In this document: positions 4,715-27,555 of the stretch, piece after piece | Layout of the letters: the number at the start of each line of letters is the position of its first letter | Position numbering within the stretch: position 1 is the first letter of the stretch | NCBI GenBank assembly: GCA_904063045.1 | Contig: CAJFCJ010000005.1 | Location: 2,970,165-3,034,164 of the forward strand | DNA: 64,000 nucleotides | Direction: 5' to 3' | Source: Dimorphilus gyrociliatus | Lineage: Eukaryota > Animalia > Annelida | Translations under genes and position numbers: made by a program | Notes under the pieces: generated by a model | Seen by the model: only the letters and a program-made list of their open reading frames with translations | What the model was told of the DNA's origin: nothing | The model's database searches: none

Positions 4715-7700
4715 TCAAACAACAGAATGTTCTTGGCAAATAGCCGCCAGTTCTTTTGTAAATTCTTCTAAAACAACAGCACAATATACAGCGTTCTTAG
4801 TTTTGACTGATTCCATTGCATCCATCCCCAATGTAGATTCTACCGATTGACGACGAGGGAAGTTAGAAAATCCTTTGTCTTTATCAGAATTTCTTTGAGT
4901 TTTAGGCGATATTTTCGTCTTTAACGAAACTAATCGTGGCTTTCCTATAATAAAGAAGTAATTGGCTTGACATTAATAATACAGAATTCATATACCTTTA
5001 TCATTTATGATTGGCTGTGATGGCAATTTAACACTATCAGTTTTATTGGATTTCAATTTCCTATGTTCTTCGTCACGCCAGCTCAAGAAGCGTCTGGCTC
5101 TTATCATTAAATGATTGAAATCATTTATATTACTTGCGAAATTCTCAATCTTGTTCTTGACGCTTATCAACACCTGTCAAAAATTTTTACAGGAACGTAA
5201 GAATATATTACATATAAGTGTATCCGAACGTATTGTGGTTTATAATCACCTGCGTCACACTCCTTATTGTAGGTTGAAATACCAAATTAGGATTTAATAG
5301 GAGCGATCTTAATAACGGTTGAGGGAAAATAGCCAAACGAGCGATAACACCAGTAAGCACCAAATTTACGTATAGTGAATTTTGCATCATTGTATCGAGT
5401 TTAGACATTATGGCCGACAAGAAAGGACCAAGAGTAGGAGAGTCTAGGGCGGATGCAGGGTCATAAACTAGATGTGAGGGTATCTCTTGTGAAATTTTTG
5501 CATTGGAAGCCTCGATATTCGAATCATCACACACAACAACGGAGGGTTTTTCGAAAGCATTTCCATTGATCTCTCTCTGCAGCAAATCTTCTAGTTCTTG
5601 AATGGATTCATTAATACTTCGCTGACGAAAATTTTCTGGTAATTTCAATGCATCAATACTTTTAATAAATGAGTCTAAATCTGTCAAATTTAATTGTGAT
5701 AGCGTTTCCATTTCCACTTCATTTTCATTTTTTATATCGTTTAATTCAATTATTGAATTTTCAGTGCTATCATCTTGACAGTTCAGATCAACAGGCATAG
5801 CTATAAATTCATCAGGAGATGGATCTTCTCCGTCGTACTTATATTTCCATTTATCACAAGCTGCTTTACATTTTTGTAATTTCGTGCTAGCTACCATTAA
5901 GTAATCGGAATAGGAAGTTTCAAGCTCCCCTAATTGATTTCCTGTTGCTGAATCCGTCGAACTATTGATAAATGAAAAAGAAGGAAAAAAAGATAACTTA
6001 ATAAACATTTAGAATCAATCATTTATTCTTCAAAAAATCTTCAATAATTAATGAAACAAACCTAAACGAATTATTCAGACTGTGAATAGAATCATTATCA
6101 TCATCTGTCGTTAATTTAAAGAGAGGGAAACGTATCCTACTCGTTTTTTGAGGAGTATTATACGTCGGTGAGTCGTAAGTAAGGCTTGAGAGAATTGCAG
6201 GAAAAGAATGAAAGAATAAAGAAAAAACCAGTGTTAATTATTAGTTGGCAAAGTAGCATAGATGAAAACTTATATATACTATATTTATAAACATAGCATA
6301 TATGTTTAAACAGTATGAAGCGAAAGAATTCTTTCTCTTAAAGAGAGAGATGGTTTATGATCTTGAAAAACACCTACCTATTATCAAAACTTTCGTTGAA
6401 ATTACAAAATTTCTTCCTCTCGGCTTTGAGATCAAGAAACTTTCTCGCTGACGAACCGTACAAATCTAGGTCTCTCACGCATAATTTTTGACTAACCATT
6501 ACATGTCTACACGGTATAAGATATCTGTAAATAGTAAAAAATATAGTTAATGTTTTGATAAGAATAAAGTAGTATGTTTTATGAATTAAAGAATAAATGA
6601 ATGATAACCACTACGTACTTGAAAATCAAATGAAACATACATTCTTCTGAATTCAAATCTATTAGTGTATGGAATAGATTTAAAGTTACTTGGCATAACT
6701 GTAAATAAAAGAAAGAGAGAAAATAATCAATTGAGATGATAAACGATCAAAGAAATAGACAAAAAGACATGTTCTTTTAAACAATGATACTTGAAAAATT
6801 AGTAAATAACTTGAAATATTTACTCTAGTTTGACTATTAATTCTCCTAATAAACGATTCCAAAATGGTTGTGTCGTCATGCTTTTCGGTTAGAATAAACT
6901 TGATAAATCCTCTTAATAGAGCTGGCTCGCTAAGTTTTCTAATAAACAAATCTAGATAGGCGGTTGCTGCAATCACCTCCTCAGATGAATTCTGTAAAAG
7001 AGAATTATATGTTCACTTAATGATTCTAAGTTTTAAAATGTTTTAAATATTCACATATAATAGTATTATTATTATTATACAATATACAGTATGTACAATA
7101 CATTAACATTCATATTTCACGTAAAAGCAAACATATATAAAAGAATCTTTGTGCAAATGAAAATAAAATGAAATTCAAAATAATTTAGTTGTGTAGGGCT
7201 TTAAAAATAGAAACCAACATCCCCAAAATCGATATAAAATAAAATCAAAGCATATAGCGTGATCAATATTCACATCTTTTATATCTTACGAACACATGCA
7301 AAACACATATTTGTCTTGTATTTAGCGCATATTTTTTTTATGAACATACCCCACAGTAAGATTCAACTACAGATGACGGCAACTTTGATCCATCCTGGGT
7401 TTGTCAGTAGGCAAATAGAAATGATGAAGAATAGGTTATTGATATTATAAGGATAAGATCAAGGTTAATATCAACAAATAAAAAAGAAGAATATTGAAGT
7501 ATTTAATGTCTACAAATATGTATATACTGTAAATATATATACATACGAAACTTTCCCTATACAACGCACCATAGGACATAACAAAAAAGATACTATACTC
7601 CATATAAAATTAGCTTTATTAAAATCTACAATGCATTCTTGTATAAGAATTAAAAAGAAAAAAAACCAATCCAGTACTTTTCCCGCATTTCTATATGCAA

Positions 7701-21814: not shown

Positions 21815-22200
21815 AAATAAATGATAAAGAGTTTTTATTTTTTTATTTTCCTTTTTTCCATAGATTATACCACTGGTGCTCATTTTTATGTCAGAGCTCT
21901 TTTATATATGTGTATATAAAAGTAATAGCAGTTTGTTTTTTCACCACTCAACTGTTTGTGTCCTCATTTTTACTTGTCTGTCTATCTTCTCTCGTCAAAT
22001 AATTATAATTAGCATTAGATTCAAACATTTGTGCTGTTTTTGTATAATAAATAAGAACAGACTTGGCTGGAACAAGATTAGTTAAACAAGAGAGAAGCTA
22101 TTATTTATACTTTATTGTGTGTGTGTCTGCGTAAAATGCGTTTAATTGATATTCACAACAAGGATATATAGTTAAGTCGTTCGTATGAATACAAGATCTT

Positions 22201-25200
22201 TTACATTATCTCTGCTCTTTTCTTATTCAACACGTTCTTGATATAGTATTCGCCTGCTTTGTAGGAAGAACGAACCAGCGGTCCTGATGCTATATAAGCG
22301 AAACCCATCTCAAGTCCGACCTTTTCCCAATAGTTAAACTTTTCTGGTCTAACATATTCTTGAACTTGTAGATGACGCTTTGTAGGTTGCATATATTGAC
22401 CGAACGTGACGACATCGACGTCAATCTCTCGGAGATCTAAGAAAAGGGCGGCAATTTTTTAACAATTTATTACTCAGTGGGTCATTTTCATACCATTCAT
22501 CACGTCCAAAATCTGTTGATCCGTTTCACCAAGGCCAAGCATAAGGGACGTTTTCGTTAATATACCTTTTTGAGCTTTCTTAGCGTGCTCTAAGACCCTC
22601 ATTGATTGGTCATAATTTGCTCTAGGGTCTCTAACGTACTTTTGCAGATGTTTTACAGTCTCTAAATTATGAGCGTAAACGTCCAAGCCTGCTGAAGCAA
22701 CTAGCCCTACCAATTCCAGATTTCCACCAAAATCCGGCGTTAAGCACTCAACAAGTATATTCGGTTTACTGAGTAAGCACAATAATTGGATTATAATGTA
22801 AACACAGTTAGAGATTTCCTACTTTTTCTTAATCTCCGTAATCGTTCGAGCGAAATGTGCCGCACCACCATCGGGTAAGTCTTTATATATGAAAAAAAGA
22901 GTCTGAATGATTGAGTAAAAAGGAGGAAAGGAGAAAAAAAGTATTTTTTCACAATACCGTCTCTATCAACCGAAGTAATTACAATATAATCCAATTCCCA
23001 TTCAGCTATCGTTGCTGCAGTATTAGCTGGTTCGTTAGGATCTAAAGGCGGCGGTCGCCTGGAAGTTTTAACGGAACAAAAGCGGCAGGCTCTAGTGCAG
23101 CTTTCGCCCATAATCTGTTATAGGATATCTATTTTATTAATTCTATTTATTTGTAATGAAAACATTCATTCAAGTCTTTTTAATAGGTGGGAAACAGTGT
23201 TATTTAAGGTTTTTATTCGTTCTTCGAGATATTTAATCTTATTGATTTCTTCCGACTTTGCTATTGCCTTTATTGCTGCATGCTGTTCCAAGTTGCACGA
23301 CGATTTGATCGGTGACAGATAGATGTCATTTTCGTGCGATTTATTAGACTCATTGATTCCGCATAACTTTTTAAAGATTTTCATTACAAACGTTGTTGTG
23401 AAACAAATTAAATTTAGAGGTGGAGGGAGATAGGATTTCATACTATATTCCCGAACTAAACCCATCATTTGGGACATCCAAATTCTCTTCGAATCTTGTT
23501 GGACTTTTTCGAATGTATGGGAGAATATTGCTATGAGTAAATTTATCAATAATATGTTAACTATTATCATATAGCAAACAACCCAGGCAATAATCACATA
23601 ACTAACGTTTGAATCATAATATTTATTCATCCTCTCAATATCATTACTTAAATTTTCGACATGTAAATCACCAAATATTCTCCATAAACCTTCCTTAAAT
23701 GGTACGCTTATTGAGCTAGTAGAATTACTGTCCAACTTGGGAACGTTTCTCATCAAAGCGGCATAAGAAATGCCAAAGCTAACGACGAATATCATAAAAA
23801 TTACCAGAAAGTGCATAAGATCTCGAATAAGAACTGCAACGGCTAAAATTCTAGGACCTAAATTATGTTTAACATGCGCAAATCTAAGAAGGCGTACATA
23901 AAATAGTATAAGTGTTAAGCCGCTACAAAATCTCAACCAAAATTCCGTTGCTAAACCAACTTTTAACGTATAGGTTAACCAGAATAAGAGAAGCATGGAA
24001 AAATCTAGAATGTTCCAGGTATCTTTAAAATATTCTTTTAATTTATAAGCATGCGTTTTAACTACTAAAAGATGTATGATTCTGTTTGGCCACATTTTTG
24101 TTACATCATGTAATTCTATCTCGCTAGTAAAACCATGACAATAGGCTGTTATAATTTGTTTTAATTCTTCTGCACTTAACCCAAATACCCAAGTAATTGT
24201 TATCCATTCAATTGATGATACAGTGTCATCCAAATCAAACATGACAATATACGTATAAAAGATCAATAGGATAAGAAAAGATACGAAATCAGAGGCTAAC
24301 TTAAAGATTGGTGATGTATAAAAGGCTAAAAGCTTCTTTCTAATATTATTTTCCAAAGGATACGCATTAATCCGATTCGAGCAGGATTCACTTTTTTGTT
24401 TAATATCCGAAACATCCAAAAAATGTATAAAGAACGGTGCAAATATACAAAAAGGGAAAAAGAATAAAATCCTATTAGTCTCTTGGTTAACTCCACCCAT
24501 CCACTTACTCTGAATAAACGTCTGAACGGCTGAGTGTTCAATAAAAGATCTTAAGTCTGCGCATTCGGCAAGGCTTAAGGCACTTGTAGTCTTACTGAGG
24601 TCAAATGGAACGAAAGAAACTAAATGTTCGTATGCTTTAGTTCTACTATTCGAATATATTTCTGAAAGGGTATCGACGGCTAATTGTTCAAAAGTATTAG
24701 AGCTATGTAATAATTCCTTTGCTAAAATAGTTTCCGATAATCGTTGGCATCTTTTAGATAGCTCTTTAAATAAGATCGATGAGAGAAGAGAAGCGACGAC
24801 TGTATTAGAAGTTTTTGTAATCAAATACTTAATTAATTTCGTGTTGTGGGTGAGGATAGCGTAAATCAATAAATCCCAAACGGCCTTTTCTTCTGATTCT
24901 TTATAGTCTTCATAGGTAGCTGTATGAACAGCCTTCAAATATTTCTCACAAGTCACGGCTGGCTTGTAAATAAATTTATAAGAACTACCTAATAAACTAT
25001 GTATGATAAAACTGATCAAATAAGCCACGTTACGCTTATCACTCTTTAATAAATAGCTTGACCCTTTGTAATATTGATATAAAATTATTCCAATACCATC
25101 TAATTTCGTAAGATTGACGTATAATTCTCTATAATAAGTAGGCTCTCTCTTATTATAGCTACAATATGAAATTCTCTTGCAGAAAGTCTCATTAATGAAG

Positions 25201-27257
25201 ATATGAAGTTTCTTTTTCCCTTGAATCTCTCCAAATGATTAATAACAAAACAGTCGCTCTCTAAACTATGATGTTCTAATTGTCCAAGGAACTCTATAAC
25301 TTGCTCAATACCTTGATTCAACTCGGAACAAATTTTATCATTTAGAAAGGAAATTTGATCTTTATTTAACAACCATTTGATTGCCTCTTCGGTTTCCTTT
25401 ATCTTATCACTTATTCCCAAGTTAATACTCTTCAGACCTTCTTTGTAGATGGAATATATCTTATTGGCGATTAGACCTGAATTTTCTACAACGAGGACAT
25501 ATGCTTCCGATTTAAAAGCTCTAATTAATTGTTTATTAGTATTTTCACGCCCTTCAATTATCAAATGAATTACCAATCTAGAAGTCATCTTCAGGTACAC
25601 TTCTACTTCTTCTCTTAACCTTTCTTCAATATCATTACCTTGGCAATTAATTACCAAATCATAAAACGAGGCTTGTAGGTTCGTTTTAAAATCATTTTTT
25701 ATGCAAAATATTTTGGTTTTTTCCGACCCGATAATAGAACTTTCAAAAGATGGAAGTGACCCATCGCAAAAAATCCATACAGATCTACTAAAGAACTTTT
25801 TCATAAATTCAGTAATAACTCGTGAAACTTGAACATCTGTCAATGATCCACTAAGACTTATACAAACTTCCGGTAAGATACCTTTTGTAAATCTTTTAGC
25901 TAAATATTGACAAATATGAAATGGAAAGAATTCAGTTTCGGATACGGATATTTCTAAATCATTTGTTATATAGTTATTACCAAATATAAATTTTAAGAAG
26001 TCTTCATGTCTATCCTCGTAAAACTCATACGAACAAAAGCATTCAAAGAAACGTATGCAATATTCCTTGTTATAATCTCTAGCGAATCTTGTTAAATAAT
26101 CTTTTAATTCTTCTCTTATTAATTTTAACTCTACTAAATTATTATTATAAAATTTAATAACTTGCTGAATTTCACTAGACAGGTACCCTTTGAAATTTTC
26201 AAAGCAGTTGCAAAATACTAAACAACCAATATAAACCTTTAAACTGTCTACATTATCGTTATCAGAAAAAGAGGAGAAGCGGCCAAACTGATCTATAACA
26301 TATAATTGCCAATCGGTATAATGATTCTCCTCTGTTTCGCCATAGATCAGTCGATCCAATTCATGATGATTATAAAAATTTAACGACATATTCGATTTAG
26401 AATGGTAGTAAGAGTAAAATTGTCTCAAGGCAAAATATTCAATACTATCAAGGATCAGAACACATTAACATTGAAATACAACAGTTTAATACTTATATCA
26501 ATAAGAATCTCGATTTTGGCGCGTATGTTTAAAATATTTTAAAATATTACAAAAATTATAATAACAAACTAAATACCATAATAGTAGCAGTGGCAGTTTT
26601 GGACTCTCCCCCTCCCCAGCATTCTCCGATATTGGGACATTTAGCTTCTTCACAAACCTTTTATAAATTGATTAGGCTTAATAATTAATGTTATAATTTT
26701 CTTAATATTAATTTATATTTAATATTTCTGAGTTTTATTTACCGTAGCTAGTTTTACATTTCTTAACCCTTTTTTAAGGTTATTATAGCTTTTTCCCATT
26801 GGTATTTTCGTCTTAAGCCATGGTGGTAATTTCAATCTGTACAGTAGTGAATAATTGTTTAGAAGGATAACACTTGTAATAGTAATAAGCAGGGTTATTG
26901 CGTCACCTTTTTCCTCCTTTTTCTTTTATCAAGTTTTCAGTATATTGGGTACTAGCACTACTCTGTTCAATAAAATCTGATAGACCAGGTCCATTAGATA
27001 GTTTTTCTTTTTGGGCAGAACTTAAAGATGATGTGAAGCGATATTTATTCTATAAGTTAATAATTTTATTCGTTATCGCCCTCTCATTTTTTTAATATTA
27101 CCCCTCTACCCGTTTACTTTGTAGTTTAAGTCAACTTCATTTAAAGATATATTAATTTTATATCAGTTAGTTCAATTGATAGACTTACAAGTATGGGTAT
27201 GGATGAGTTTAAGAGATATTTTTGGCCACCACTATTAATCGTCCTTGCAAAAGCCAT
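22201..27257 (-). CDS. LIAS: Mitochondrial lipoyl synthase, multi-exon, with a 3462-nt intron (23115-26576) hosting a nested gene
   Basis: Exons: [10 protein letters not shown]... | ...NGPGLSDF... | [12 protein letters not shown]... | [27 protein letters not shown] (ends 26577) | [16 protein letters not shown] (starts 23114) ... [45 protein letters not shown]. Both Cys motifs are present and the splice junctions are in phase. Confidence 0.96.
23166..26389 (-). CDS. Intronless divergent TRPM-like cation channel, split by one -1 frameshift (functional gene, assembly error or pseudogene unresolved)
   Basis: The 5' ORF has TRPM MHR motifs ([35 protein letters not shown]). The 3' ORF has [32 protein letters not shown], hydrophobic S1-S6, [21 protein letters not shown], a TRP box-like IWMSQM...LPPPLN and a terminal coiled coil. 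The first ATG is at 26389, and the restored length is about 1074 aa. Confidence 0.85.
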
Positions 27258-27555
27258 AATTACCAGTTTATACAGACGAAAGTTTCTCCAACTAATAGCA
27301 GACGATTGCGGTTATGCAGATATTACATTCAATTTGTTATTTAAAAAATATTTAAATCTATTATCAAATTCTCTAAAATTCCTTTGCAAAACTATACAAG
27401 AAGATATCAAAAAAAGAAACTGTGATTGACATATTTAAAATCAAGAAAAATTGATTTAAAGTCACGCTTGATAGATACTCATCCGATCCATCTCAAACTA
27501 GCAAAGCAATTCGGATGTTGGAATAGTATTTAGTTTCATAAATTAATAAATAATA

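Follow-up and report, generated by a model that had tools for sequence, protein, structure and literature searches.

Genes carried within an intron of another gene are exemplified by the single-exon KTI12 gene in TXNDC12 (PMC3192792), and the TRPM ion channels are represented by the solved structures of the TRPM2 chanzyme (8srj/8sr7), Nematostella TRPM2 (6co7) and human TRPM2, TRPM4, TRPM3, TRPM5 and TRPM8. Here we describe a locus in which the two themes meet: a TRPM-family gene nested on the same strand within intron 4 of LIAS, the gene for lipoyl synthase, in Dimorphilus gyrociliatus. This miniature annelid has a genome of 74-78 Mb with a median intron length of 66 nucleotides (nt), and the paper describing that genome mentions neither TRP channels nor the LIAS locus (PMC7854359). 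All coordinates are positions in the window, that is, the whole 64-kb stretch of DNA analysed, and refer to the minus strand unless stated. An old nested gene is genuinely present in this intron, and we judge it fairly probable that it is now being lost.

The locus shares several features with these systems. As in TXNDC12, a compact, near-single-exon gene lies wholly within a single intron that its housekeeping host splices out, and read-through or intron-retaining RNA is found. As in the solved TRPM channels, the encoded protein has an MHR4 domain (PF25508), six transmembrane helices, an FG(D/E) pore motif, a TRP helix and a coiled coil. TRPM genes have been divided into alpha, beta, beta-like and gamma clades, and a survey of 2026, in which D. 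gyrociliatus was not included, found up to eight of them in molluscs and hemichordates (PMC13143021).

The LIAS host gene and its fourth intron

LIAS lies on the minus strand with 8 exons and 371 codons including the stop, from the ATG at 27257 to the TAA at 22201, as defined by RNA joints and sequence. A whole-genome search with TIGR00510 (NCBIfam lipA) gave four collinear exon blocks and no match elsewhere, indicating a single-copy gene; when scored one by one, the exons match model positions 43-301. The RNA data come from one public run of 2017 in the form of Logan contigs, which behave as cDNA and were placed on 22000-27400. Each contig has one depth figure; starts, ends, separate molecules, strand-specific depth and rare isoforms are invisible in such data. 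Eight RNA joints were found, all GT..AG on the minus strand, seven in LIAS and one inside the insert. The LIAS features are as follows.

27189 to 27257, minus strand: exon 1, coding part, with the ATG at 27257-27255 (sequence; donor fixed by RNA joint 27049>27189)
26907 to 27049, minus strand: exon 2 (RNA joints 27049>27189 and 26836>26907)
26743 to 26836, minus strand: exon 3 (RNA joints, with 26655>26741 read with a stated shift of +2, and sequence)
26577 to 26657, minus strand: exon 4, 27 codons, auxiliary-cluster motif (TIGR00510 positions 43-69; RNA joint)
23115 to 26576, minus strand: intron 4, phase 0 with GT-AG borders, 3462 nt, containing the nested gene (RNA joint 23114>26577)
22958 to 23114, minus strand: exon 5, radical-SAM motif CTRACRFC (profile match, RNA joints)
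22823 to 22880, minus strand: exon 6 (RNA joints 22880>22958 and 22768>22823)
22494 to 22768, minus strand: exon 7 (RNA joints; TIGR00510 positions 119-233)
22201 to 22436, minus strand: exon 8, coding part, with the TAA at 22203-22201 (RNA joint 22436>22494)

Exon 4 ends with TATATIM (last base 26577) and is followed by GT at 26576-26575; AG at 23116-23115 precedes exon 5, which begins at 23114. The original prediction had placed a phase-0 intron at exactly these borders, and both the sequence and the joint 23114>26577, present in a contig of the RNA run, which also gives the seven other GT-AG joints, bear this out. It had also described the intron as unusually long and as separating the exons of the two Fe-S cluster motifs. 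The other LIAS introns measure 139, 70, 85, 77, 54 and 57 nt, against a published genome median of 66 nt (PMC7854359), and the cysteine motifs CX4CX5C and CX3CX2C are found in exon 4 and exon 5, respectively.

Because an unrelated, distant eukaryote has a 53-nt GT-AG intron at the identical codon boundary, ATATIM/LMGDTC (contig L033), intron 4 is ancient, and the comparison of these sequences indicates that the insert came into a pre-existing short intron.

The nested TRPM-family gene

TRPM-like sequence occupies 26389-23166 on the LIAS strand, in two open reading frames (ORFs) that both lie wholly within the one host intron. The predicted distance of 187 nt between the LIAS donor and the nested ATG at 26389 was confirmed. 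The prediction of a whole, intronless coding region of 3224 nt fared less well: its TRPM-like nature, its strand and its extent hold, but ORF1 ends at a TAG, the channel part follows in a different frame, and ORF1 contains an optional 81-nt intron.

25100 to 26389, minus strand: ORF1, 429 codons and TAG, putative divergent SLOG-like (MHR1/2-type) N-terminus (open frame; weak domain leads; dN/dS 0.26 in the ORF1 frame only)
25900 to 25980, minus strand: optional 81-nt GT-AG intron within ORF1 (RNA joint 25899>25981)
23166 to 25238, minus strand: ORF2, shifted by -1 against ORF1 and homologous from 25127, TGA at 23168-23166 (Pfam, structures, paralogues; dN/dS 0.22 in the ORF2 frame only)

ORF2 encodes MHR4, six transmembrane helices, an FGD pore motif, a TRP helix (IWMSQ) and a C-terminal coiled coil. 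It matches PF25508 (TRPM2-like/MHR4) with E=8.5e-16, and its residues 249-513 match the six-transmembrane ion transport family PF00520 with E=9e-16. Matches to the solved structures of TRPM2, TRPM4, TRPM3, TRPM5 and TRPM8 reach down to 8e-50 and run from MHR4 through the TRP helix, the MHR4 part corresponding to TRPM2 residues 622-848. The pore and TRP region aligns with the S5-TRP region of the solved TRPMs; the IFGD pore and the IWMSQ...REY TRP helix align with the FGEL and (V/L)W..Q motifs of D. gyrociliatus paralogues, with which the coiled coil also aligns. ORF2 has no ATG ahead of a Met just upstream of S1.

ORF1 is probably a very divergent SLOG/MHR1-2 domain that lies below every curated threshold. 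It gave no significant match to Pfam models with the default cut-offs, to PDB sequences or by word search, and a HMMER search of 1.84 billion proteins returned two fragments only, both from the pseudogene of a related species described below. The best sub-threshold Pfam match is LSDAT_prok ('SLOG in TRPM'), with E=0.082 and 12.6 bits against a cut-off of 25.4. The language-model neighbours among atlas features, which serve as leads only, all belong to 'SLOG in TRPM' clusters, with scores of 0.83-0.85. Against the paralogue pair P0001/P0002, hhalign gives a collinear alignment to the N-terminal part with E=0.039, in which a signature stretch of ORF1 pairs with IFIIKGSGQIADILA. AlphaFold2 applied to ORF1 alone as a single sequence gave a mean predicted local distance difference test score of 35.7, unusable for a fold search. 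No public protein model contains ORF1 or ORF2, and an Rfam search of intron 4 gave no match.

The optional intron of ORF1 is in frame and open. The spliced contig has a depth of 15.7 and the unspliced one 37.1, so that the spliced form accounts for roughly a third of the depth. Because the intron is in frame and its encoded peptide is kept in the related species, it behaves as an exitron.

An orthologous copy in a related species and past selection

A related species is represented by Logan assemblies of four runs. Its LIAS exon 7 protein is 91% identical to that of D. gyrociliatus, so it is clearly a different species; the exon 4 peptide is identical. Contigs from separate runs are identical over 5 kb. 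A single 17-kb contig shows the same three-gene synteny and the same LIAS donor and acceptor, and intron 4 has 3143 nt. The comparison of this intron in related species that had been suggested thus reveals the same nested arrangement at the same intron, with the copy decayed.

The orthologous sequence is 72-78% identical at the nucleotide level, and 181 nt separate its start codon from the donor. In the frame of D. gyrociliatus it contains 13 stop triplets and about 65 alignment gaps, mostly of lengths that are not multiples of three; roughly 130-180 nt are gone from the transmembrane region and the stop codon is lost. It is a heavily damaged pseudogene, and LIAS and both splice sites are kept. 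Because the one TRPM paralogue looked up there, of the P0001/P0002 type, is intact in the same assemblies, as a single frame of 979 amino acids (aa), the damage is specific to the nested copy.

The ratio of nonsynonymous to synonymous substitutions (dN/dS, or omega) between the two species was estimated by the Nei-Gojobori method over gap-free codons. The proportions pN/pS are 0.215/0.544 in ORF1 (omega 0.26) and 0.158/0.492 in ORF2 (omega 0.22). In frames displaced by one or two bases, omega rises to 0.6-1.25. The LIAS exons show omega of 0.05-0.11 and a pS similar to that of the nested gene. Because omega is low in the true frames only, both halves of the nested gene coded for protein and were selected during most of the period since the two species split.

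The frame break between the two halves

ORF1 stops at the TAG at 25102-25100, the channel half is read at -1 relative to it, and both frames are open over 25238-25100. There is no single continuous frame for the N-terminus and the channel, either in the DNA or in the RNA contigs. The RNA contig 23086-25900 passes over the break with no indel, no differing letters and no joint, so the frame break is also present in the transcripts. The break appears to inactivate the gene, and the main RNA predicts only a 429-aa N-terminal fragment.

25128 to 25294, minus strand: frame-break zone, 152 nt longer than in the related species (alignment, codon usage, RNA contig)

The 152-nt surplus of D. gyrociliatus (2 modulo 3) lies between EQVI (25295) and ELYVNL (25127), and the frame of the related species runs continuously across the gap. 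Two readings account for this difference. In the favoured one, the related species underwent an in-frame deletion of 144 nt and D. gyrociliatus carries an 8-nt surplus. In the alternative, a single 152-nt deletion in the related species removed an ancestral -1 shift site. The former is favoured by the related species aligning with the ORF1 frame just upstream of 25136 (IIRESLL vs VIRKSLF) and by a codon-usage likelihood, with paralogues added to the training set, that favours a break at 25160-25120 over one at a slippery heptamer further upstream by about 4 nats, as well as by the lack of RNA structure after that heptamer. The likeliest lesion is therefore, with modest confidence, an 8-nt surplus at 25135-25128, probably a small and recent indel. 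Three further leads on the break zone were tried and rejected. A mobile element or repeat as its content (200 nt) was dismissed since the segment is single copy in the genome; a hidden Markov model (HMM) built from nine paralogue ORFs matched the ORF2 frame only and did not place the break; and a match of the ORF1-frame segment (z=4.9) to a 756-aa ORF at locus L023 was discarded because that ORF is not TRPM-like.

In simulations, 0.02 neutral substitutions per site left both ORFs stop-free in 1.5% of runs. Since more than this would rarely leave both ORFs open, the break is either very young or tolerated. As is typical of a unitary pseudogene, the disabling lesion is found in both DNA and RNA and the orthologue has decayed in the related species.

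Several observations weigh against the view that the gene is being lost. Relaxed constraint, with dN/dS near 1, is not seen: the long-term average is 0.22-0.26. The post-lesion interval spans at most about 0.01-0.02 substitutions per site. Both ORFs are perfectly open but for the one break, so that function could persist by recoding, by a rare splice or in a polymorphic intact allele. The slippery heptamer sits in the zone where they overlap. The placement of the break leans on a 5-residue match and the difference in codon-usage likelihood, and without an outgroup the 152-nt difference is not polarised; the continuous frame of the related species would also fit an ancestral gene that needed a -1 shift. 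Furthermore, the RNA evidence is a single RNA-derived run, seen as contigs.

Transcription across the insert and coupling to LIAS

An explanation that departs from gradual loss holds that the insert is a retrocopy of an intron-rich TRPM gene, expressed through the LIAS promoter or by alternative processing of the LIAS pre-mRNA, so that a channel is coupled to a mitochondrial gene. The original prediction had proposed both parts. The arrangement itself invites this idea: the gene is on the same strand, is nearly intronless and begins 187 nt from the host donor, and the host intron is old and short elsewhere. We nevertheless consider it unlikely.

The insert is covered end to end by RNA contigs with depths of 44-86 (23086-25900 and 25981-26606). 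By bin arithmetic, LIAS introns 1-3 (27188-27050, 26906-26837 and 26742-26658) have zero depth, and therefore genomic DNA and bulk pre-mRNA are undetectable in the RNA run. The insert contigs end 29-30 nt into exon 4 (26606) and exon 5 (23086), where the k-mer graph branches into spliced and unspliced paths. Because the contigs end at these branch points, there are RNA molecules that run across the border of exon 4 with the insert and across that of the insert with exon 5. This fits retention of a long intron, interference by the nested gene, or overlap at the ends of a nested transcript. Retention of long introns is reportedly more frequent in D. gyrociliatus (PMC7854359), and interference between a nested gene and its host has been described (PMC3192792). 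We infer that the insert RNA is largely host-derived.

The continuity of RNA across both borders is compatible with co-transcription, and to this extent the predicted link to LIAS stands; coupling of the channel to the host does not follow. An intron-retaining LIAS RNA reaches a stop 6 codons into intron 4. Because reading stops there, the channel in such an RNA would be a remote second cistron, and operons and trans-splicing have been excluded in D. gyrociliatus (PMC7854359). In addition, the channel half is out of frame, and the related species kept LIAS while losing the nested gene.

The sequences between the insert and its host exons are listed below.

26390 to 26576, minus strand: spacer from the LIAS donor to the nested ATG, 187 nt, with E2F-like TTTGGCGC and TATA-like TATAAG (sequence; covered by RNA contig 25981-26606)
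23115 to 23165, minus strand: tail from the nested stop to the LIAS acceptor, 51 nt, with AATAAA at 23151-23146 and 23138-23133 (sequence)

The E2F-like octamer lies at 26515-26522 (plus strand), upstream of the nested ATG, and TATAAG follows about 20 nt later. The E2F-like motif occurs 5 times in the window against 2.5 expected. The 181-nt spacer of the related species, otherwise poorly conserved, contains TTTCGCGC and TATAAAAG (L027, about 6485-6500). As judged from these motifs, the E2F-like and TATA-like pair is a candidate intronic promoter or enhancer, and the nested gene may have its own promoter in the spacer. At the other end, LIAS exon 5 begins 18 and 31 nt downstream of the two AATAAA hexamers, which occupy the stretch that must hold the branch point and pyrimidine tract of the host intron. 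Neither hexamer is kept in the related species, whose copy also lost its stop.

Beyond the intron, the RNA contig with LIAS exons 1-2 extends 2.2 kb upstream toward a divergent thioredoxin/NHL gene, and the contig with the 3' exons extends 1.4 kb into a convergent gene with an SH3 domain. At each end of LIAS, either there is overlap with transcripts of the adjacent gene or unstranded assembly has merged the two.

Paralogues and the question of retroposition

The D. gyrociliatus genome has at least 30 TRPM-like matches. The closest paralogue is 34% identical to the nested gene and is a single open frame of 1038 aa; further single open frames have 988, 1047, 1321, 855 and 788 aa. P0001, an annotated one-exon protein of 981 aa, is 100% identical to one uninterrupted frame of the assembly. 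Over the channel half, the paralogues and the nested gene share 31-34% identity. The premise that TRPM genes are normally intron-rich thus fails here, where the closest paralogue and several others are single open frames of about 790-1320 aa. This set looks like a large, mostly unannotated, intron-poor expansion. Representative TRPM-like loci are C1:2385381, C2:4057103, C2:4064614, C5:292153, C5:479759, C9:610052 and C45:8202; at the last-named contig (L023, C45:5500-11500), an open frame of 929 codons that is not TRPM-like lies beside a TRPM-like one.

Because the nearest paralogues inspected are also single open frames, intronlessness is not evidence for retroposition, and nothing points to an intron-rich parent. 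The nested stop is not followed by a poly(A) tract, and no direct repeat pairs the two flanks of the insert as a target-site duplication would. With a dS of about 0.9, age could have erased both. What survives of the retroposition proposal is the insertion into a pre-existing short intron, and an already intronless gene inserted by any mechanism fits equally well.

Frameshifting and rescue splicing as ways to keep the gene alive

The remaining explanations concern the frame break. In the first, a still functional gene would rely on programmed -1 ribosomal frameshifting to make an SLOG-only protein and a minority of full-length channel.

25214 to 25220, minus strand: candidate slip site for -1 frameshifting, the heptamer G_GGA_AAA read in the ORF1 frame (sequence)

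Programmed -1 frameshifting is characteristic of viral genes of the gag-pol type and, among animal genes, of PEG10. Like these, the nested gene has an X_XXY_YYZ heptamer and a downstream ORF in the -1 frame. The heptamer is canonical (AAG GGA AAA, 25222-25214; slip site G_GGA_AAA at 25220-25214), and ORF2 lies exactly at -1, opening 18 nt upstream. Both ORFs are otherwise intact although the copy of the sister species decayed, and one 152-nt deletion over the slip site would account for the continuous frame there. The peptide read in the -1 frame after the heptamer resembles P0001 residues 383-395; that stretch of P0001, however, is mostly claimed by a much stronger downstream alignment. No stimulatory structure follows the heptamer (minimum free energy -16.5 kcal/mol, z=0.19, first stem at least 20 nt downstream), and the heptamer stretch is missing from the related species, so that no conservation is seen. 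Codon usage favours the ORF1 frame to about 25150-25120, past the heptamer, and the related species aligns in the ORF1 frame just before 25136. Such frameshifting is very rare among cellular animal genes. Slippage at the heptamer is thus quite unlikely. The broader proposal, in which the break is a matter of design and recoding anywhere within 25240-25100 yields SLOG-like protein as the main and full-length TRPM channel as the minor product, possibly from LIAS RNA that retains the intron, would be a shade less probable again.

A rare splice that removes a 2-modulo-3 stretch from 25330-25040 would also restore the frame and give a minor mRNA for the full channel. There are 54 GT..AG pairs of the fitting length class, such as 25311>25127 with a good donor, and the nested gene already has one optional intron. 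However, none of the 54 joints occurs in the RNA contigs, though the 81-nt optional intron was recovered at comparable depth, and the AG that the best donor would join comes two bases too soon. We regard this rescue as very improbable.

Misassembly, which had been named as a possible refutation, or sequencing error as the source of the insert or of the frame break is hardly credible, because the related species shares the arrangement on its 17-kb contig in independent assemblies and RNA contigs match the genome without indel and cross both insert borders.

Proposed history and significance

The history that we favour begins with an essentially single-exon TRPM-family gene, now old, in the ancient phase-0 intron 4, across which LIAS is spliced. 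The nesting predates the split of D. gyrociliatus and the related species, and purifying selection acted on the nested gene for most of the time since. RNA of the insert on the LIAS strand, at least partly continuous with exons 4 and 5, may arise by intron retention or read-through. Loss would now be under way, leaving a wreck in the related species and a single, very recent frame break in D. gyrociliatus, which parts the SLOG-like N-terminal ORF from the channel ORF. In this light the locus represents a nested gene of an ordinary kind that is disappearing, and no new coupling of a channel to mitochondria.

If this is correct, the locus is a clean case, open to dating, of how a nested gene arises, persists and disappears in a compacted animal genome: insertion in an ancient short intron was followed by long selection between the splice sites of the host and by independent loss in two species, with the host untouched. 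It also carries two cautions. Missing introns are no proof of retroposition when the nearest paralogues are intron-poor, and RNA coverage of a nested gene is no proof of functional coupling to its host. The intron-poor TRPM-like expansion of D. gyrociliatus deserves a study of its own.

Comparison with known systems

The single-exon TRPM-like paralogues of D. gyrociliatus have the same architecture as the nested gene and the same lack of introns. Their alignments, in contrast, show no frame break, and their N-termini are not alignable by the paralogue HMM. Compared with the solved TRPM channels, the nested gene is short, with only about 1080 codons and neither NUDT9H nor a kinase tail; its SLOG region stays below threshold, and its coding sequence is split by the frame break. 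It differs from the genes with programmed -1 frameshifting in having neither a stimulatory structure nor conservation, and codon usage puts its break elsewhere. Finally, the nested TRPM gene is set apart from KTI12 in TXNDC12 (PMC3192792) by lying on the host strand, with 187 nt between the donor and its start and 51 nt between its stop and the acceptor, and by its decay in two related species.

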